From contig CBFFRP010000263.1 of assembly GCA_965644295.1 (NCBI GenBank), positions 186,001-250,000 on the forward strand: 64,000 bases of DNA. The letters are read 5' to 3'. A model generated the notes under the pieces. The model ran no database searches. It was given only the letters and a program-made list of their open reading frames with translations, and was not told the DNA's origin. Origin of the DNA: Paraphysomonas bandaiensis (Eukaryota > Protista > Chrysophyceae). A program made the position numbers and the translations under genes. This document shows positions 2,748 through 62,449 of the stretch, piece after piece; the first letter of the stretch is position 1; every line of letters begins with the position of its first letter.

Positions 2748-5700
2748 CTAGCGCCGTATTTTAATTCCTCCGACAAGCCGACGACCTCTGCATCACATTA
2801 CGTAAACGGAGCTACTAGGACGCGGATTATATATTTCTTTACCTGCCGTTCCCGCCTCCCCTATCTCCAACTCTTACAGATGGTCGTTGTATGCCGAGCT
2901 TAGGAAGCGGCATTTCACTTCTGGACCAATCAGTCTCTGCCTCACCAGTATACTCGGGGTAGTATAATGTGAATATATCCCACACGGAGCGGGGTGTGGA
3001 GAGAACTGAATTGACAGACTCTGGATGAGAGTCTCTATGCACATTTGTGCAATTTTCTGAATCTGAAGTGTCTGAGGAGTCATTTGGTATCGGAGAAGGG
3101 ACTACAGCTCCGATGTTGTTCCTGCGTCATCGATCATTTTTCAAGTGAGATGTCGGAACATAATCACGGATTACAATCACAATTCTTTCATATAAATTCG
3201 AACAAATAAAAATGCCATAATAATAACATCTAGTCATTCAAGATGTAGAAAAAAGTAGCGAGGTTATCGTTACCTCATATCAGCTATATCAACATCTTCG
3301 ATCTGATCATCTGCAGGTAGTGAACGATCTTGCGATCGAAGAATATAGTGTGGAGGGTGTTGATCACATACCACAGCCAAACGCACAGTGTCCCAATTAG
3401 TATGTCCGGTGATAATTGAGAGGCGATGGGCTATCGATTCAAACGTATCGTCTTCGCGAATATAACTCAGACATGGACCAGAGTTTGACAGGACCGGCTT
3501 GGCCAGCTGCAAATAAAGTTCAAAGCTATGAACCGCAACAGGAATAGAACGAATCCGTACTCCCCCGCAGACTGTGGCTTTACCCGACATGAACCTCCAC
3601 TCTTCTGCAGTCACATATTGCACCCCCAAACTTTGTGTCGTATATGAAGCACACTCAGAGCTGAAGTATTCAACCCAACTTTCCGGTACAGTACTCAGCT
3701 GTGCAGAAGGCGACAGAATGCTCTTAACTTGATAATTCCATATGCAAAACGCAATAATGGCTGGTTCAGAGCTACCAATAGGAGGAACTAGTGATGGACG
3801 AATCGATCTGAACCAAAGATAGTCTCTAGATTCAAAAGAATTCGTGTCGCTGTTAAATTCTGGCTCATTGTTAGTCGCATCTAACTTTGGCCTTACATCT
3901 CTGGTGTGCTCATTCGCACCTTCCATTCGCCGCTTGGTGCATTTCTGCAACATCCCGTCAGATGCAATACCCGTCTCAAGGACACCCGTGGAGCTAGTAC
4001 TGGGAATACTGCTTTCACGCAATATTTCTTCAGAACGATCTCTATCTGCAGGGCTGCCACCAGTATCCTCATCTGCGAGGCATATATGATGCCGCACAAT
4101 CTGCAGTAGCTCAGACATTTGCAAAGCTTCATCTTTAGGAATATGGAGAAAGATTTTATTGTGGGCGACGAATTCGTCCGGTACAGGTGTAATTCTTTCC
4201 GGCCAAGTAATATCTCGGTAGACGGGTATGAGGTCCATAACGTCAGATATATTGCGGCCCTTCCACTGCTCTAAGTATAACTGTGCAGCCTGGGGAAATA
4301 TCCGCTCAGATAGCCATTCCTCACGCTGAGACCTCATGCGGTGGTCAACTAGCACAATTTCCATCCCACGCACCATGGAATTACCAGAAATTGGGAAGGG
4401 AACACATCCGATCTCCAAATAATACTTACCCTTACTCACAGAATTCATAAATTTCTCCAGAGACACCTTTTGACGAATGGACATAAACATTGACTTCTCA
4501 GAATTCATTTTTGTAGTCCTACCAACAGCTAATCGGCGGTGATCTGGGAAGCGCAGGTGCTTGGACACCGCCTTCGGGACATAAACGCACGACATATCTT
4601 TGGAGAGAGTAATTACAGCTTCACGATTAAAGAAACACTCTACGGGCTGATCATTTTGTGGAATCCCGTTATTCAGAGCTTGTATCCATAATCCGACATT
4701 TCTACGAAAGTAAGGGCTAAAGCTAAAATCACTGTGGGGATATATATGCACCAATACTTTATAAGCTTCGAATTTCAAATATTGCTTAAGCTTTGAGACA
4801 GGTGGTACACTTGTCTCGTCTTCCTCATCACCTGAATGAAGTAAGGTTGGAGGCAGACAGCTGATTATGTCTCCACACTCCACATCAGCATCTTTCAAGT
4901 ACATATCACTGTGCTTATCAATCTCTTTCACATTAAGAGGAGACATCACATTCACAATATCCACGTCCTGCCACGCTGAAGGAACAGATAGATTGAAGTG
5001 TTCAAACGCAGAAGTCAATAGGGCTTGTCCTGTAGAATGCAGAGTCGACACACTTTCGTTTTCTTCTAGAATGACATGCCCGATGTACGTCAAAGGAATA
5101 GCAGCAGCACAGGCCTCTGAGTCAGATCCAGTTGGTGACGCAATCAACGGCGAGTGAGGGAGAGTAAAATCTTCGTCGAATATTTTGAAAAAAATTACGT
5201 TGGAGGTACAAGAGCTTTGGTTAATAGACTCACTCAGAGCGCCGAGTACTTCGCGTGAAAGATCTTCCAGCATGACAATGAGTTCGGTGCGATATCCCTG
5301 TTGCAGTTTTTTGAAAGGAATCCTCCCCTTACCAATACCACAACCTTCACAAGGATCAAAAGTTAGTGTAAACTGAGGAGGCTGTAGATATTGTGCAGCT
5401 GTCTTGAGAATCTCTTTTTCTTTAAGACGAATAGATGAAATTTGCTCCACTAGCTTGGCGTCATTTTGCTCCTGGAACACGTGAATGAAGTAGTATGCTC
5501 CTTGATCATCCACAGGAGTCAAGAGGTCTCCAAAAGTGACCACGCTTCGTACACGAAATACGCCATTAGAACAGCATGTTCCCTTCCAGAGTTCTGAACA
5601 CAGATACGAATTTCAATAATAAAGGCGTGCAAGTGCGTTGACATGAAAAAACAATCAGTACCTATCATATCAGGTGAGGTATTCAGTTCATCGGCAATAG

Positions 5701-52054: not shown

Positions 52055-53247
52055 TCAGTGCACACGACGAAATTCACAGACGCCCTCCGGTCCAATTTCA
52101 AAGTCGCAGCTACTCGTCTCCATAAGAGGGGATTTCACTAAATGCATACGCCGTACATCTTCTCCAGTGTTATGATCCGATTGTGTGTCGGTATGCATCA
52201 CCACGCGGGAGGTAACGCAATGATGCCACGACGATCCTAGAGCAGGAACGTATAAACCTTCTCTGTCAGTAATTAGATCGCCCATACTTCCTCCTCCATC
52301 TGCACCATTACCATATGAAGATACGACTTGATTCGTCACTATGACACAGCATCTGCACAATTCAGCTAGCTGCTTGAGAGTAGATGCCTGAGCAAGGACG
52401 TATACCTCTTTATCTAGTTCGGTTAATCCCTCTTTCCTTGCAAGAGCAGCAATAGAATCCACTACCACCTATATATAAACCAAATGCATCAAACTAAAAC
52501 CTTTTGAATACAACTGACAACATAAATATTCAGTAGATTGTCTACTGCAAATGTGTGCACAACAGATGAAGTCGTACCAGAGATATACTGTGTTCCACAA
52601 CAAAATCTTGTAGACCATCCACCTCTGCCTTGAGCTCTTTGCATGACAAAGGTCGCCGGACTGAAATTCGACGAAGTAGAGAATCCATTCTGTGTGGGGC
52701 ATCGTCGGTCCACCTTGGGGAGAATGCACGAGGCTCGCGGGTCTGTACTATTTCCTGAAGTCGAGCTGGAGAAAACTTCAACTCGGTGTCTATGTACACC
52801 ACCCCGCCACGACCCACAGCATCCGCTTGTAACAACGTGGCAGCACAACATCCCATGCAGAGTTGACTCTTTCCAATTCCAGGGGGACCACACACCTCAC
52901 TAATAGTGCCCACTATCAGACCACCTCCCATCATTTTATCCAAAATATTAACACCTGTTGAGGAAAAAAATGAAGTATTTTGTCTGTCTTGAAGTATTGT
53001 GAGTGCAGTCTTGGGATGGACCATGCTTGATGCTGCTGATGACAACAAGCTCTGGACATCGTAGTAGCTGAGATCTGCTATCGTCATCAACTGCAAAATC
53101 GATGCATCGAATAAATCCTGATTAAAATATAACAACAAATCACGTGCTGTATAGTCTATATACCCTGCTGGTACGAATACCGCCTTGAATTAACCGCAAA
53201 GTAACTGCAGGATCAAGCTTTAGTCTCTCGATTTTCCTGCTGGCCAT
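52055..53247 (-). CDS. RAD51B: RAD51 paralog B
   Basis: MASRKIERLKL start; STGVNILDKMMGGGL; Walker A GPPGIGKSQ; VVYIDTELKFSPARL; VVDSIAAL; VIVTNQV; PALGSSWHHCVTSR. Confidence 0.85.
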
Positions 53248-53757: not shown

Positions 53758-54834
53758 ATGAAATATACATCAGTAATGAAGAGTGTAGTCCCTTTATTCT
53801 CCCTATTAATCTGTATGGGCACAGCAGTGGCTCATGATAAGGTCCTGCTCTCTAATATACAAGTACTGACCTTTTATAAAGACAGCTACACCACTGGACG
53901 AAGATCAAACCCTCTTCCTCAAATAGAATGTGAGAGTGGATGTTATAATTATTTTCCTGAAGAAATTCAGTGTTACAATCGTGAGTGATGAGATATCAGT
54001 TAGCGACCTGTCACCTCATATATATATGTGTATAGGTGGATCTGATGGATTCGATGTGAATTGGAAATGCGAATCTACCCTACCAGATGGTGTTAAGTTA
54101 TCTAGGGTAACTGTTGGCTGTGAAGGGTATGAATGTGAGGTATTAGCCTTGTGTCAGTAATATTGTGTCATGCAGATACGACTATCCAGACGATCCCTAT
54201 GTACTGAAAGGTTCCTGTCAGGCAATAGTTTCTGTACAAGGTGCTCCACAACGAAGTTATACTAGCTACCACAGTTATGAATCCGGCTCTCAAAGAGGCA
54301 GTGGCCGCCACTCCAGTGAAGGAGGAATGTCTCTTGGCACCGTGCTAGTTGTTGCAGGCATTGCGTTCGTCATATACAAAATATTCAACCACTTCCGCCT
54401 ACAACAGCAGCAGTATGCAGGGGGGGCTCGCCCTGCTTCAGGGTATGCACGTCCAATGGGAGGAACAGGTAATTTCGGTTCTGGATTCGGATCTGGCTGG
54501 GGCTTCGCTCCTGGAATGGGGTTTGCCCCTGGCATGGGGACGGGAGGAGGGTTCTGGTCTGGATTGGGTATGGGAGGGCTTTTAGGGTCAATGATGTCGA
54601 GAAGGTGACGTCTTGTACAATTTGCCTTTTGAGTCTGTAACAGTGTTATTCATCAGGGGTGGGGGATGGTTTGGTAATTATGGGGGATATAGAACGGGGT
54701 ATGGGGGATACAGCACTGGAATGGGTGGAATACAGTCGAACAATTCCTGTGCCTTCTCTAATGACGGAAGAAGTAATAGTTCAAGCAGCGGAAGAACAAG
54801 GCAATCAACATTCGCTACCACTCGACGGAGATAA
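53758..54834 (+). CDS. SARAF: Store-operated calcium entry-associated regulatory factor (TMEM66/DUF1183), multi-exon
   Basis: DKVLLSNIQVLTF..TTGRRS.PLPQIEC; QCYNRGSDGFDVNWKCE; CEGYDYPDDPYVLKGSC; GGGFWSGLGMGGLLG; FATTRRR*. Confidence 0.92.
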
Positions 54835-55078
54835 CTTCATGTTGCTCACATCTTACAACTGATATTATTTAAAGGCTTAATTCTTCATGTATTGTGTACT
54901 TAATTCTTAGCAGTAGCATAACATACTGTAAACAATGTAATACATCGGATTTATTACTATTCCCGTTTGTCGGAATGGTTTCGAAATGATCACTTGTAGA
55001 GGGCCCAAATTATGATACTGTGAACTATATATCATCAAGGTCTATCTATACATAGACCCTATTATATGAATAAGAGAA

Positions 55079-55167
55079 ACGAGTCAGTAGTATTAACTAT
55101 CAGCACTGACACTATGTAGAACGAAAGTTATGCCCACTTGTGGCAGAGCGCTCCACATCATCCCCGT
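55079..55167 (-). ncRNA. Box C/D snoRNA, SNORD59/snR54-like (18S Am guide); leftmost of 25 copies, repeating every 166 bp
   Basis: Minus strand ACGGG-G-ATGATGT...TAACTTTCGTTCT-A-CATA-GTGTCA-GTGCTGA-TAGTTAATACTA-CTGA-CTCGT: terminal stem, box C, 13-nt antisense to 18S AGAACGAAAGUUA, degenerate D', C' and D. Confidence 0.78.
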
Positions 55168-58100
55168 ACTCCCATTCAACATACAAATCATACATAACAA
55201 GGATATATATTGTACACATAGACCCTATTATACGAATAAGAGAAACGAGTCAGTAGTATTAACTATCAGCACTGACACTATGTAGAACGAAAGTTATGCC
55301 CACTTGTGGCAGAGCGCTCCACATCATCCCCGTACTCCCATTCAACATACAAATCATACATAACAAGGATATATATTGTACACATAGACCCTATTATACG
55401 AATAAGAGAAACGAGTCAGTAGTATTAACTATCAGCACTGACACTATGTAGAACGAAAGTTATGCCCACTTGTGGCAGAGCGCTCCACATCATCCCCGTA
55501 CTCCCATTCAACATACAAATCATACATAACAAGGATATATATTGTACACATAGACCCTATTATACGAATAAGAGAAACGAGTCAGTAGTATTAACTATCA
55601 GCACTGACACTATGTAGAACGAAAGTTATGCCCACTTGTGGCAGAGCGCTCCACATCATCCCCGTACTCCCATTCAACATACAAATCATACATAACAAGG
55701 ATATATACTATACACATAGACCCTATTATACGAATAAGAGAAACGAGTCAGTAGTATTAACTATCAGCACTGACACTATGTAGAACGAAAGTTATGCCCA
55801 CTTGTGGCAGAGCGCTCCACATCATCCCCGTACTCCCATTCAACATACAAATCATACATAACAAGGATATATATTGTACACATAGACCCTATTATACGAA
55901 TAAGAGAAACGAGTCAGTAGTATTAACTATCAGCACTGACACTATGTAGAACGAAAGTTATGCCCACTTGTGGCAGAGCGCTCCACATCATCCCCGTACT
56001 CCCATTCAACATACAAATCATACATAACAAGGATATATATTGTACACATAGACCCTATTATACGAATAAGAGAAACGAGTCAGTAGTATTAACTATCAGC
56101 ACTGACACTATGTAGAACGAAAGTTATGCCCACTTGTGGCAGAGCGCTCCACATCATCCCCGTACTCCCATTCAACATACAAATCATACATAACAAGGAT
56201 ATATATTGTACACATAGACCCTATTATACGAATAAGAGAAACGAGTCAGTAGTATTAACTATCAGCACTGACACTATGTAGAACGAAAGTTATGCCCACT
56301 TGTGGCAGAGCGCTCCACATCATCCCCGTACTCCCATTCAACATACAAATCATACATAACAAGGATATATACTATACACATAGACCCTATTATACGAATA
56401 AGAGAAACGAGTCAGTAGTATTAACTATCAGCACTGACACTATGTAGAACGAAAGTTATGCCCACTTGTGGCAGAGCGCTCCACATCATCCCCGTACTCC
56501 CATTCAACATACAAATCATACATAACAAGGATATATATTGTACACATAGACCCTATTATACGAATAAGAGAAACGAGTCAGTAGTATTAACTATCAGCAC
56601 TGACACTATGTAGAACGAAAGTTATGCCCACTTGTGGCAGAGCGCTCCACATCATCCCCGTACTCCCATTCAACATACAAATCATACATAACAAGGATAT
56701 ATACTATACACATAGACCCTATTATACGAATAAGAGAAACGAGTCAGTAGTATTAACTATCAGCACTGACACTATGTAGAACGAAAGTTATGCCCACTTG
56801 TGGCAGAGCGCTCCACATCATCCCCGTACTCCCATTCAACATACAAATCATACATAACAAGGATATATATTATACACATAGACCCTATTATACGAATAAG
56901 AGAAACGAGTCAGTAGTATTAACTATCAGCACTGACACTATGTAGAACGAAAGTTATGCCCACTTGTGGCAGAGCGCTCCACATCATCCCCGTACTCCCA
57001 TTCAACATACAAATCATACATAACAAGGATATATATTGTACACATAGACCCTATTATACGAATAAGAGAAACGAGTCAGTAGTATTAACTATCAGCACTG
57101 ACACTATGTAGAACGAAAGTTATGCCCACTTGTGGCAGAGCGCTCCACATCATCCCCGTACTCCCATTCAACATACAAATCATACATAACAAGGATATAT
57201 ATTGTACACATAGACCCTATTATACGAATAAGAGAAACGAGTCAGTAGTATTAACTATCAGCACTGACACTATGTAGAACGAAAGTTATGCCCACTTGTG
57301 GCAGAGCGCTCCACATCATCCCCGTACTCCCATTCAACATACAAATCATACATAACAAGGATATATACTATACACATAGACCCTATTATACGAATAAGAG
57401 AAACGAGTCAGTAGTATTAACTATCAGCACTGACACTATGTAGAACGAAAGTTATGCCCACTTGTGGCAGAGCGCTCCACATCATCCCCGTACTCCCATT
57501 CAACATACAAATCATACATAACAAGGATATATATTGTACACATAGACCCTATTATACGAATAAGAGAAACGAGTCAGTAGTATTAACTATCAGCACTGAC
57601 ACTATGTAGAACGAAAGTTATGCCCACTTGTGGCAGAGCGCTCCACATCATCCCCGTACTCCCATTCAACATACAAATCATACATAACAAGGATATATAC
57701 TATACACATAGACCCTATTATACGAATAAGAGAAACGAGTCAGTAGTATTAACTATCAGCACTGACACTATGTAGAACGAAAGTTATGCCCACTTGTGGC
57801 AGAGCGCTCCACATCATCCCCGTACTCCCATTCAACATACAAATCATACATAACAAGGATATATATTATACACATAGACCCTATTATACGAATAAGAGAA
57901 ACGAGTCAGTAGTATTAACTATCAGCACTGACACTATGTAGAACGAAAGTTATGCCCACTTGTGGCAGAGCGCTCCACATCATCCCCGTACTCCCATTCA
58001 ACATACAAATCATACATAACAAGGATATATATTATACACATAGACCCTATTATACGAATAAGAGAAACGAGTCAGTAGTATTAACTATCAGCACTGACAC

Positions 58101-59062
58101 TATGTAGAACGAAAGTTATGCCCACTTGTGGCAGAGCGCTCCACATCATCCCCGTACTCCCATTCAACATACAAATCATACATAACAAGGATATATACTA
58201 TACACATAGACCCTATTATACGAATAAGAGAAACGAGTCAGTAGTATTAACTATCAGCACTGACACTATGTAGAACGAAAGTTATGCCCACTTGTGGCAG
58301 AGCGCTCCACATCATCCCCGTACTCCCATTCAACATACAAATCATACATAACAAGGATATATATTACACACATAGACCCTATTATACGAATAAGAGAAAC
58401 GAGTCAGTAGTATTAACTATCAGCACTGACACTATGTAGAACGAAAGTTATGCCCACTTGTGGCAGAGCGCTCCACATCATCCCCGTACTCCCATTCAAC
58501 ATACAAATCATACATAACAAGGATATATATTGTACACATAGACCCTATTATACGAATAAGAGAAACGAGTCAGTAGTATTAACTATCAGCACTGACACTA
58601 TGTAGAACGAAAGTTATGCCCACTTGTGGCAGAGCGCTCCACATCATCCCCGTACTCCCATTCAACATACAAATCATACATAACAAGGATATATATTACA
58701 CACATAGACCCTATTATACGAATAAGAGAAACGAGTCAGTAGTATTAACTATCAGCACTGACACTATGTAGAACGAAAGTTATGCCCACTTGTGGCAGAG
58801 CGCTCCACATCATCCCCGTACTCCCATTCAACATACAAATCATACATAACAAGGATATATATTGTACACATAGACCCTATTATACGAATAAGAGAAACGA
58901 GTCAGTAGTATTAACTATCAGCACTGACACTATGTAGAACGAAAGTTATGCCCACTTGTGGCAGAGCGCTCCACATCATCCCCGTACTCCCATTCAACAT
59001 ACAAATCATACATAACAAGGATATATATTGTACACATAGACCCTATTATACGAATAAGAGAA

Positions 59063-59151
59063 ACGAGTCAGTAGTATTAACTATCAGCACTGACACTATG
59101 TAGAACGAAAGTTATGCCCACTTGTGGCAGAGCGCTCCACATCATCCCCGT
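59063..59151 (-). ncRNA. Box C/D snoRNA, rightmost (5'-most on the minus strand) of 25 copies
   Basis: Identical to the copy at 55079-55167. Confidence 0.78.
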
Positions 59152-59692
59152 ACTCCCATTCAACATACAAATCATACATAACAAGGATATTATACTCGTA
59201 TATGTATATCTCAGAGATATTCTCACTCAACATGCATCGCATATATGATTTGTACATTGTTGGGGTCTCTACATATATAGACTGCTGCTGTCCACTCTAC
59301 TCTCTCTGTTCCTCTCTGTATGTACAATGTGTGACGCTCTACGAGTGCATTGAGCACTGCGCATACTCAGTGGCATCCCTGCTCAACCATCAAACTCCTT
59401 CACTATATAATCAGCATTACCAGCAAACTGAAAGTGCTCTAAATATCATAGTTTTTTGTGTAAAATCCAGGTTATTGTACACTAAAAACGATCATGTATG
59501 AACAATGAACGCAGACTCGACTGCTGCTGTAGAGTGGTGCATGATTCCTCTGCCTGTACTGCGTATCAAGCCAATTTAAACTAGCTCCTTGTAGGTGACC
59601 CTTATTACGATTAAACCTTACCAATTGATAGCGTACTGCATGCCATGATATACCGCCTCCCGCACTGTTAACCTGCTCATTTACCAGTATCC

Positions 59693-62449
59693 ATGTCATC
59701 TGAAAGCCCTCATAGCGATCACATTCGCTCCATATTCGACGAAACAGACCCAAGAATTCGATCAGATATTCTTCGAATTATTGTTGAGGTATTGTATGTT
59801 ATTCATATCTTAGAGGATGTTGATTATGTGTCGGTGAAGCATTTAAATAGAGAGAAGCTATACAATGCAGCCACAGTGTTGGAAGATGAGATCAGCTCTC
59901 GTCTCGTGGGGCTGAATGCGAAAAGGTTCCGCTACTTCTGCGTTGTCTCAATACCCTAGATTAATTCATCATTAGATTAAAAGTACTTAAGTTTCATAAA
60001 ACGATTCTCATTGGCGATTGGGATGAATGCCTCAAGGTCTGCAACCACCTGGCAACAATATATGCTTAACGTGTACCTCAGTTGCTGAGTTCTCTAGTCC
60101 CGAAACCAAGCCTTCGTTGTTTTATTTATCACATATTACGCCAGCAGTACTTGGAATTGATTGATATTGGCGATCACGAAAGAGCATATTCGTTTCTTAT
60201 GAAACATTTGAAACCACTGGAAGATATTGCTATTGCACAGGTTGTCTAAACTGTCACTGAAATTGAACATATTTATAGCTTGGATACAGGGACAAGGTGG
60301 CAATGAATTCAAAGAACTTTGCTACTTGCTAACATGTAAGTCTGTGGGAGAATCTGACCATCATACATTCAGGTATGCCGCTGTATAACGCAGAATGTTG
60401 GAATTTATCGTGATATAACTCAACATTCACGCGTATAGTTGCCACGATTACAATCAGGAATCATACTTATATGTGTTTACTGGCGTGTAGGAGATGGAAG
60501 CACTACTACCACCAGCGTGAATTGGTGGCAGATGAGCTGGTCGATGCTCTTTACCGTCATCTTCAGGCTGAGGGTGGTGTTTTTGACATCTGTCCGCCCC
60601 CTATGGTTACCGCATCTGCACACTCCTTGGCTACTCTAGTACAGCGGGAGAGCTCACACGGACGGAAGGGCGGAGAAAGTGGTAATGGAAGAGCTGCTCA
60701 TTCCCACAGCAGCAGACTGGTGCGGTTACTCAAGCAGAGTTATGCCTTTCAAGCAAAGCAGACAGCAACACCTGACTGCAGAGAATTACACGCGGAGTCC
60801 AGCAACTGTTCACAGGAAGCTGTGAATGGCAAGAAAGATTTTGATCCAGTGCCACTTGTACGCCGCGTGATGGAGGACTACGTGCCTGTCGCGCACCCTA
60901 CATCCCTTCAATGTGTGATTTCGACCAAGCAGCATGTGCAGGCGCATAGTCGGGAACCTGCCCAACGGCTCAGTGCTGTGCAAGATGCTAGGGTTTCCTG
61001 TTCAACGTTTTGTCGAGGATCTTCAGATAACCAGTGTAGAGTAATTGGTGGTATCGATGGAGGGCTCTTGGCTCAGTGGCGTATTGATCTCTCGCGATGC
61101 AATGGGGATGTATCGCCGGTTATAGAGCCAGTATATAGTATGATACTACCTGGGATGTTCTCTGAGGATTCATCAAAGGATGGAAAGCGTACATCTAATA
61201 GAAAGCGTCGATTTCAGGGTAACAAAAAAATTCGTGACATTTGCGTAGATGAGTCAAGCAGTGTATTGGCGACCGCTTCCTCAGACGGATGTGTGAATAT
61301 CCTCGCCAGAGCTTCTGAAGGGGAAGGATGGTATCAACACTCTGGGAGACTTACAGTGCATCAGGTAAAAGATGATTCTGAATATCTTAATGTATTTCGA
61401 ACGTAGTGTATGCTGCGAATTTGTTGCGGATTACCTTTGGCATGCTAACGTCAAATATACTTATTGCAGGGAGACTGCCAAGCCGTGCATCTGTATCCCG
61501 AGGGCAATTACCTAGTATCAGGAGGTTTCGATAGAAACATCTCCGTCATTGATGTAGAGACACTTTCGATCACCAAGACTTTTAGGGGTCACAGTGGAGC
61601 AGTCACTCAGGTTGGATGCAACAGGTATCATTACTAGTTTTATTTTATCTCTGACCAGTTCATGCCATTGTGATAAATTAAAGGTCTGGGAATTTGGTGT
61701 ATTCATCCTCTCGGGATGGGACTGTGAAGTTCTGGGACATGTTGTCAGGTATAATGCTACGGTCTTGCGTCGCGTTCGTATCGACTAAAATTGGCTACTA
61801 GGCTCCTGTGTTCGCACATTTTCGCCAAACAGTAGAACTTCATCTACCCAATCAGCAGGGCGAAGCATCACCGAGGTTTTTTCCGTGATTCGTTATACGC
61901 GTTGTGAATAAATAGTTTTCGTGGCTAGGTTACATCTGCTGTTATGTCATTTGATGGGTTGCACATGTTGACTTCATCACGCTTTTCTCCTTGCCGTCTT
62001 CTGGATATGAGAACTGGACAAGTGGTGGCCAAATACATCTCACCCAACGGATGTGGTAGCATGAGCCCTTTTTATAGACCCACCTTCTGTTCCAGTGATA
62101 CGGTATGATTTATAGGGTACCAACCTACTTCTGTTAAGAATTGTATGCCCAGGGTGTGGTAGCTGGGGCTGCCAATGGGAGCGTCTCACTTTGGCCAACG
62201 CATTCCGGTAGAAACCCCACTACTCTAGAGCTATCGCACTATGCTGATGGCAACCACAACTCCTTCATGGAACATATATCGAAGTTAGAAGTAACGCGCT
62301 GTGGATACGATAGATTTACTGGAGTAGTCAGTGCATTGACAAGTGATGGCGTTGCATTATGGAGCACTAATAGACACCAGAGTCCCCATGTTGTTGACGA
62401 CCCTAAAAGTTGCGAATTTCAACCTCTAGGCAGTAGTGTTACCACATAG
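59693..62449 (+). CDS. LisH/CTLH plus WD40-repeat protein, multi-exon
   Basis: ILRIIVE-HLNREKLYNAATVLEDE (LisH); ILIGDWDEC, ILRQQYLELI (CTLH); WD repeats LATASSDGCV, YLVSGGFDRNI, FRGHSGAV, SSSRDGTVKFWD. Confidence 0.75.

Follow-up and report, generated by a model that had tools for sequence, protein, structure and literature searches.

A tandem array of probable box C/D RNA genes

The window analysed here is a stretch of 64,000 nucleotides (nt) from the genome of the chrysophyte Paraphysomonas bandaiensis (GenBank assembly GCA_965644295.1, contig CBFFRP010000263.1, positions 186,001 to 250,000 of the forward strand); coordinates given without a contig name are positions in this window. It contains a satellite-like tandem array at 55050-59190, which is very probably an array of genes for one small nucleolar RNA (snoRNA) of the box C/D class that guides the modification of rRNA. 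Tandem Repeats Finder (TRF) reported a period of 166 bp, 24.9 copies, 99% matches and zero indels. An exact-string search with the 89-nt RNA of the minus strand gave 25 letter-identical copies at a step of exactly 166 bp, from 55079-55167 to 59063-59151. The 25 genes thus lie on the same strand and are separated by 77-nt spacers. An earlier note, made from the sequence alone, had given the same position, unit length and copy number, and all three proved right. The elements of the array and of one representative copy are the following:

55050-59190, minus strand: whole tandem array, 166-bp unit, 25 complete predicted snoRNA genes (TRF, unit-by-unit comparison, genome search)
55411-55499, minus strand: representative 89-nt box C/D snoRNA (exact-match coordinates; all 25 identical)
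55495-55499, minus strand: 5' stem half ACGGG, followed by one unpaired G (sequence)
55487-55493, minus strand: box C, AUGAUGU, six of the seven positions of RUGAUGA (sequence)
55450-55462, minus strand: D' guide UAACUUUCGUUCU, 13 nt, followed by one A (18S complementarity)
55445-55448, minus strand: D' box CAUA, degenerate, one nucleotide past the guide (position)
55432-55438, minus strand: C' box-like GUGCUGA (sequence)
55420-55431, minus strand: second (D) guide UAGUUAAUACUA, 12 nt (sequence)
55411-55419, minus strand: box D, CUGA (55416-55419), and 3' stem half CUCGU, pairing with ACGGG (sequence)
55500-55576, minus strand: one 77-nt inter-copy spacer, with an A/T-alternating tract, GTATGT and TAG

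All the elements that the earlier note had listed were found in the order it gave, in the copy at 55411-55499. A 24-nt non-guide stretch lies between box C and the D' guide, and a six-nucleotide gap, GUGUCA, separates CAUA from C'. The sequences of box C and box D are identical in 25 of 25 copies. The terminal stem ACGGG/CUCGU has 5 bp, and its spacing would be compatible with a C/D kink-turn, which could be read as a 5-bp canonical stem, a three-nucleotide bulge (G, A, U), a tandem G-A, a U opposite U and a G opposite C. The atypical final U of box C stands opposite the A that precedes box D, and these two may pair. Thermodynamic folding was uninformative (z of -0.3 and -1.25), which is usual for C/D RNAs.

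Unit-by-unit comparison showed that variation between units is confined to the spacer, where it affects unit positions 12-15 and, in the last unit, one tail position (G>A); in the first unit the initial 18 positions are replaced by unique flank. We propose that the copies are kept homogeneous by concerted evolution. When one unit was used as a query against the whole assembly (62.5 Mb, 669 contigs), the array was found at one genomic place only, and elsewhere a single copy limited to the snoRNA was found on another contig, C247.

The array is intergenic. On one side it adjoins the 3' end of a convergent SARAF-like gene, and on the other it is followed by a divergent WD40-like gene. A minus-strand AATAAA lies about 95 nt downstream of the array. 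The surroundings are the following:

52055-53138, minus strand: RAD51-paralogue-like ATPase (by eye only)
53758-54834, plus strand: SARAF-domain gene with a Gly-rich tail (Pfam, 9.6e-16)
54835-55049, minus strand: downstream intergenic region with one AATAAA near 54956 (putative 3'-end role)
59191-60470, minus strand: upstream intergenic region, candidate promoter, shared with the WD40-like gene (open reading frame (ORF) map, Pfam, sequence; putative role)
60471-61406, plus strand: gene for a weak WD40/Vps41-like beta-propeller protein (ORF map, Pfam)

The guide matches the organism's own 18S rRNA

We compared the guide with an 18S gene of the same assembly (L007:534-2329, 1796 nt, intact and full-length by Rfam). 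The guide UAACUUUCGUUCU pairs with positions 968-980 in 13 of 13 Watson-Crick pairs, at a place that is unique in the 1796 nt, and none of 2000 shuffled guides equalled this match. The target lies within the conserved AGAACGAAAGUUA segment, which the earlier note had predicted and which the organism's own 18S contains exactly. Counted by the +5 rule from the D' box, the guided nucleotide is A971, the second A of AGAACG. The guide would thus be predicted to direct 2'-O-methylation of 18S A971.

We take A971 to be the presumed counterpart of yeast Am974 (snR54) and human Am1031 (SNORD59). The numbering offset of 971 vs 974 (18S of 1796 vs 1800 nt) is consistent with it. The earlier claim that the fifth-nucleotide rule lands on this adenosine is borne out for A971; that the site is the same as Am974 and Am1031 is presumed from the numbering and from published pairings of guides with sites. 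Yeast Am974 has been paired with snR54 (PMC5344495), and human A1031 with SNORD59A/B (PMC3766210).

For the second (D) guide no convincing target was found in 18S; its best match was 9 of 10 at positions 1009-1018 (L007:1542-1551 against window 55420-55429), which is at chance level (160 of 2000 shuffles). This match lies 29 nt downstream of the D' target, and its one mismatched nucleotide is the very one at +5; the pairing might serve an accessory role. A genome search with the 10-mer of the second guide gave about 160 matches, none clearly in ribosomal DNA (rDNA), the large-subunit (LSU) gene being fragmentary in the assembly.

Metagenome contigs were searched with the pattern box C, gap, 12-nt guide core, gap, CUGA, and mostly chance matches were returned. 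About nine distinct snoRNA-like sequences, where less than one is expected by chance, have the guide core AACUUUCGUUCU followed by 1 nt and then CUGA or CCGA. The register with the weak CAUA is therefore that of a recurrent natural snoRNA type. These sequences may be relatives in other protists. Terminal-stem scoring did not separate them from background, and no tandem array was seen on their own contigs.

Several snoRNA-like matches with this 18S guide were noted on metagenome contigs L037, L052, L057, L070, L086, L118, L119, L137 and L148. In several of them box C likewise ends in U (AUGAUGU or UGAUGU), and one recurrent group has CGCTCT just past box C, as has the RNA of the window.

A single paralogue lies in an intron of CCT3

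The second copy, at C247:48823-48909, lies in an intron of a gene whose exons match Cpn60_TCP1, with TCP-1 subunit gamma as best PDB match (E 3e-43, vs 1e-23 for epsilon). The host intron of this CCT3 gene has 287 nt and GT-AG ends, and the snoRNA lies at distances of 120 nt and 70 nt from the 5' and 3' splice sites, respectively, a classic position for an intron-encoded C/D snoRNA. This copy is identical to the array RNA at 85 of 89 positions, and the homology is limited to the 89-nt RNA: the 70-nt flanks on either side show no significant similarity to the array. Of the four differing positions, two form the outermost stem pair, which is A:U in the array and G:C in the intronic copy; in the latter the terminal stem is lengthened to 9 bp. 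The CCT3-intron copy and the array consensus both have every box and both guides intact. Conservation restricted to the RNA, a compensatory change in the stem and a canonical host intron together make it very likely, as judged from sequence, that the RNA shared by the array and CCT3 is a functional snoRNA.

Relation to SNORD59 and snR54

The RNA had been described in the earlier note as SNORD59/snR54-like. A permissive Rfam scan of two units, with E up to 10, gave a sole match, to sR2, at 10.5 bits, and the SNORD59 model (RF00273), searched against the whole genome, gave noise only (best E 0.36), with no hit at the array. Since C/D models transfer poorly across phyla, we read the failure of Rfam as membership not shown and not as evidence against a snoRNA. 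The description thus survives in part. Covariance-model membership, that of SNORD59 included, was not obtained, whereas the shared target segment and the shared register of guide and D' box point to a likeness that would hold only functionally.

Yeast snR54 and human SNORD59A/B are, like the array RNA, box C/D RNAs of similar size, in which a guide upstream of a degenerate D' box can pair with 18S at its conserved AGAACGAAAGUU segment. A further likeness is that the second copy is intronic in a housekeeping gene. In yeast snR54 the C' and D' boxes are non-canonical (PMC8413462). The array RNA differs from them in that no sequence homology was detectable with the Rfam SNORD59 model or with any other model, in that its box C ends in U, and in that the known genes are single or two-copy, whereas here an array of 25-60 copies is found.

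Copy number and transcription

We searched sequencing data in the form of Logan contigs with three units plus the upstream flank as query. In one run, X2, the unique upstream flank had a depth of 79.9 and the CCT3 intron a depth of 67.6, and since depth is uniform across intergenic and intronic sequence, this run looks like DNA. Array words had depths of 4371-4937 in X2, about 55-70 times single-copy sequence. Judged by these k-mer depths, the array is no shorter than its assembled length and may comprise about 55-60 units, although depth is no copy number; we used the ratio only to reject assembly expansion, against which the excess over the single-copy flanks argues, a check that the earlier note had proposed. 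The spacer variant A>G at unit position 15 has a frequency of 35% in X2 reads vs 7 of 25 assembled units. The excess over the 25 assembled units may reflect under-assembly of the array, polymorphism between haplotypes or strains, or further units elsewhere in unassembled sequence.

A second run, X10, which we guess to be RNA, contained a 196-nt contig that corresponds to one full 166-nt cycle, spacer included, plus 30 nt (k-1). Its depth, 27.6, practically equals the 28.4 of a contig that belongs specifically to the CCT3 intron, a single-copy sequence. DNA carry-over would give a ratio of about 25-60 to 1, so that the array words of X10 probably come from RNA. The X10 contigs suggest transcription through the spacers, although they cannot show transcript length, and they weakly favour a read-through precursor while lending no support to spliced micro-exons. 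No splice joints were reported for the array in this run, in contigs that drop rare forms.

Other snoRNA arrays in the genome

The Rfam U14 model gave 58 full-length matches genome-wide (49 bits, E 4e-8, below the gathering score). Of these, 57 form an array with a 255-bp unit at C434:87990-102345. The remaining match is a solo array unit, spacer included, at C413:12659-12771, beside a transposase-like ORF. The U14 guide matches 18S 403-415. In the U14 spacer, GTATGT lies about 28 nt before box C and CAG/GG 31 nt after box D, and the spacer of the window array resembles it in arrangement. The flanks of the two arrays were compared, and no common promoter or terminator motifs were found.

A third array lies within a gene. 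One 1.4-kb intron of the PEPCK gene (ATP-type; C281:507546-508856, L155:347-1657, minus strand) holds a box C/D array of 131 bp x 10; the RNA it encodes has a terminal stem of 6 bp, and its guide of 12 nt matches 18S 1373-1384. The spacer between these copies contains no AG dinucleotide. With 10 copies in one intron and an AG-free spacer, several snoRNAs must be releasable from one precursor without splicing of the one-intron-one-snoRNA kind. U3 is present in three dispersed copies above the Rfam cut-off (C423:162509-162710, C288:375673-375874 and C359:4619-4820), which shows that amplification does not extend to all C/D RNAs of the genome.

At least three rRNA guides are thus amplified here as homogeneous arrays, both intergenic and intronic. 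The central proposal of the earlier note, an rRNA-methylation guide gene amplified to 25 identical tandem copies, is upheld by the organism's own 18S, by the CCT3 paralogue and by read depth. The same note had called such an amplification very unusual. This was overstated, given the two further arrays verified in this genome and the fact that trypanosomatids, plants and green algae are known to have snoRNA genes in tandem or polycistronic form.

It is possible, but somewhat less than probable, that the arrays reflect a lineage-wide strategy of snoRNA dosage or amplification, in which core rRNA guides would be kept as expressed satellite-like arrays of 10 to about 60 copies, intergenic and intronic, with per-unit mini-introns or a shared upstream element as a conceivable processing signal. 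If real, it would be a strategy that is not known to have been described outside Euglenozoa.

A loose motif, GTAT followed after 0-2 nt by TGAATG, TGAAAT or TGAGGG, occurs 10-15 nt upstream of the 5' stem in the window array (55500-55525), in the PEPCK-intron array, in the U14 array and in the CCT3-intron copy (L019:2000-2018). It could be a processing signal, or it could be due to chance in AT-rich sequence.

How the array may be expressed

We propose that each 166-bp unit yields one minus-strand 89-nt box C/D snoRNA, which would be assembled into a fibrillarin-type small nucleolar ribonucleoprotein (snoRNP). Its 13-nt guide upstream of D' would pair with 18S 968-980 and lead to 2'-O-methylation of A971. 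The gene would exist in two forms, the single copy in the CCT3 intron, which is of the classic type, and the intergenic array. Transcription of the array would start from the upstream intergenic region and give one long RNA polymerase II (Pol II) precursor running through the spacers. Endonucleases would cut this precursor within the spacers, and exonucleases would then trim the pieces back to the terminal stems protected in the snoRNP, as happens in the polycistronic clusters of plants, algae and trypanosomatids. In our judgement this explanation as a whole, polycistronic route included, stands at an even balance between being right and being wrong.

Several points weigh against it. The D' and C' boxes of the RNA are degenerate, and a scan of the window with Rfam at the gathering threshold gave no match anywhere in it. 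There are only 4-5 variable sites, and the absence of variants from the RNA part is a weak sign of selection (P about 0.02-0.05). The array was not found in two other RNA runs (X13 and X16), one of them poly(A). Expression rests on one run of guessed RNA status, whose contigs cannot show ends, strand or level, and the mature 89-nt RNA, snoRNP assembly and A971 methylation are inferred rather than observed. Finally, the spacer holds splice-site look-alikes, GTATGT ... TAG/G, as in real introns of this genome, and, some 35-40 nt upstream of every snoRNA, a tract of alternating A and T that might be a per-unit TATA box.

The splice-site look-alikes lead to the main rival, a non-coding host gene of the SNORD115/116 kind. 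Each unit would then consist of a micro-exon of about 40 nt and a mini-intron of about 126 nt (GTATGT ... TAATAG) with one snoRNA each, which would be freed by splicing and debranching and then by exonucleolytic trimming; the branch point could be supplied by box D itself, which lies within UACUGAC. Indeed, GTATGT is found 23 nt before box C and TAG/GG 25 nt after box D, real introns of the genome use GTATGT, GTAAGT or GTACTT and YAG/G, and the U14 spacer has a matching layout. However, the sole probable RNA run that contains the array shows the full cycle unspliced, with no joint reported, and GT and AG motifs are frequent by chance in AT-rich spacers. Moreover, the PEPCK array, with its AG-free spacer, must be processed without per-unit splicing, so that the organism does not depend on such a route. 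We regard a host gene as rather unlikely.

Alternatively, the array might be a satellite that is silent or almost so, having started from a snoRNA gene copy and grown by unequal crossing-over, while the CCT3-intron copy would be the working gene. A canonical intronic copy could indeed suffice, the array copies are too alike for selection to be measured, the array was not found in two RNA runs, and the evidence for its expression is indirect. Yet the array and the intronic copy both keep the boxes, both guides and a compensatory stem change amid unrelated flanks, and at least three different rRNA guides (this guide, U14 and the PEPCK-intron guide) are amplified alike. The only other copy of U14 is a solo array unit, from which we argue that arrays are working genes, and DNA carry-over does not explain the depth in the probable RNA run. 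All together these observations make a silent satellite improbable.

Slightly less probable still are independent genes, one in each unit, with the A/T-alternating tract as promoter and monocistronic transcripts. Every unit has its TATA-like tract at a suitable distance, one like it lies ahead of the first unit, and an ATATATAT tract occurs in the U14 spacer as well. Against per-unit promoters, the spacer words, promoter tract included, occur in the probable RNA run as one continuous cycle, spacer variants lie directly beside the A/T tract, no terminator-like signal was found past the stem, and the intronic arrays of the genome cannot work in this way. An assembly artefact that expanded one or two real copies to 25 would be in keeping with the error-proneness of near-identical tandem repeats in assemblies, but the depth of the array words in X2, the agreement in spacer variant frequency and the presence of the stretch in several runs from four organism labels and in seawater metagenomes leave it with hardly any probability.

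Comparison with known snoRNA clusters

In plants and green algae (Arabidopsis, rice, Chlamydomonas, Ostreococcus), clustered snoRNAs are produced from a common precursor, without splicing of one intron per snoRNA (PMC7671301). Such clusters hold several snoRNA genes on the same strand with short spacers, either intergenic or within one intron, and the genome studied here has both forms. They differ in that they usually contain 2-10 mostly different snoRNAs or a few isoforms, whereas here one gene is repeated 25-60 times in a satellite-like fashion.

In Euglena gracilis, tandemly repeated and polycistronic snoRNA genes were reportedly described by Moore and Russell in 2012. Trypanosomatids have snoRNA genes in reiterated tandem units with polycistronic transcription by Pol II (PMC6562600). 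The repeat units of these clusters usually mix several snoRNAs, and kinetoplastid precursors are trans-spliced and polyadenylated; the organism studied here, in contrast, has short cis-spliced introns, a conventional 1796-nt 18S and intronic snoRNAs, and by these features would not seem to be a euglenozoan.

The mammalian SNORD115 and SNORD116 genes likewise comprise dozens of near-identical C/D copies arranged head-to-tail, with one snoRNA per intron of a non-coding host transcript. Their snoRNAs are orphans that lack rRNA targets, the units are of kb size and the arrays are imprinted, whereas the window array has a perfect canonical rRNA target and a unit of 166 bp, and the probable RNA run showed no spliced product.

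None of the systems compared combines, as the window array does, one canonical rRNA guide with 25-60 identical copies and a unit of 166 bp. Tandem and polycistronic snoRNA genes being already known, what is new lies in the scale, the homogeneity and the taxon, and no new principle is involved. A literature search, incomplete in coverage, found nothing on snoRNA arrays in stramenopiles or diatoms, and the snoRNA biology of this lineage is almost unstudied.

Satellites, as called by a repeat-masker, can be the main genes for essential rRNA-modification guides, and if the arrays were masked, U14 and snR54-type snoRNAs would seem to be missing from this genome. The 25-60 identical copies beside a classic intronic copy offer a natural system for studying how snoRNA dosage is set. 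The array likewise offers a system for the concerted evolution of RNA gene arrays and for the release of snoRNAs from repetitive precursors.

Further 18S matches and the rDNA of the assembly

Three further genomic 14-mer matches to the guide (on C127, C281 and C346) have no boxes and were attributed to chance. Three other 13-15-mers of the window match 18S, either directly or as its complement; they fall within coding or unstructured sequence and were rejected as snoRNAs.

The rDNA is fragmentary and rearranged in the assembly (contigs C68, C188, C196, C437, C516, C525, C551 and C653). Of the 18S copies inspected, only two were intact, and several were truncated or internally deleted. LSU pieces abut the 5' end of 18S, and the sarcin-ricin loop has one match genome-wide.

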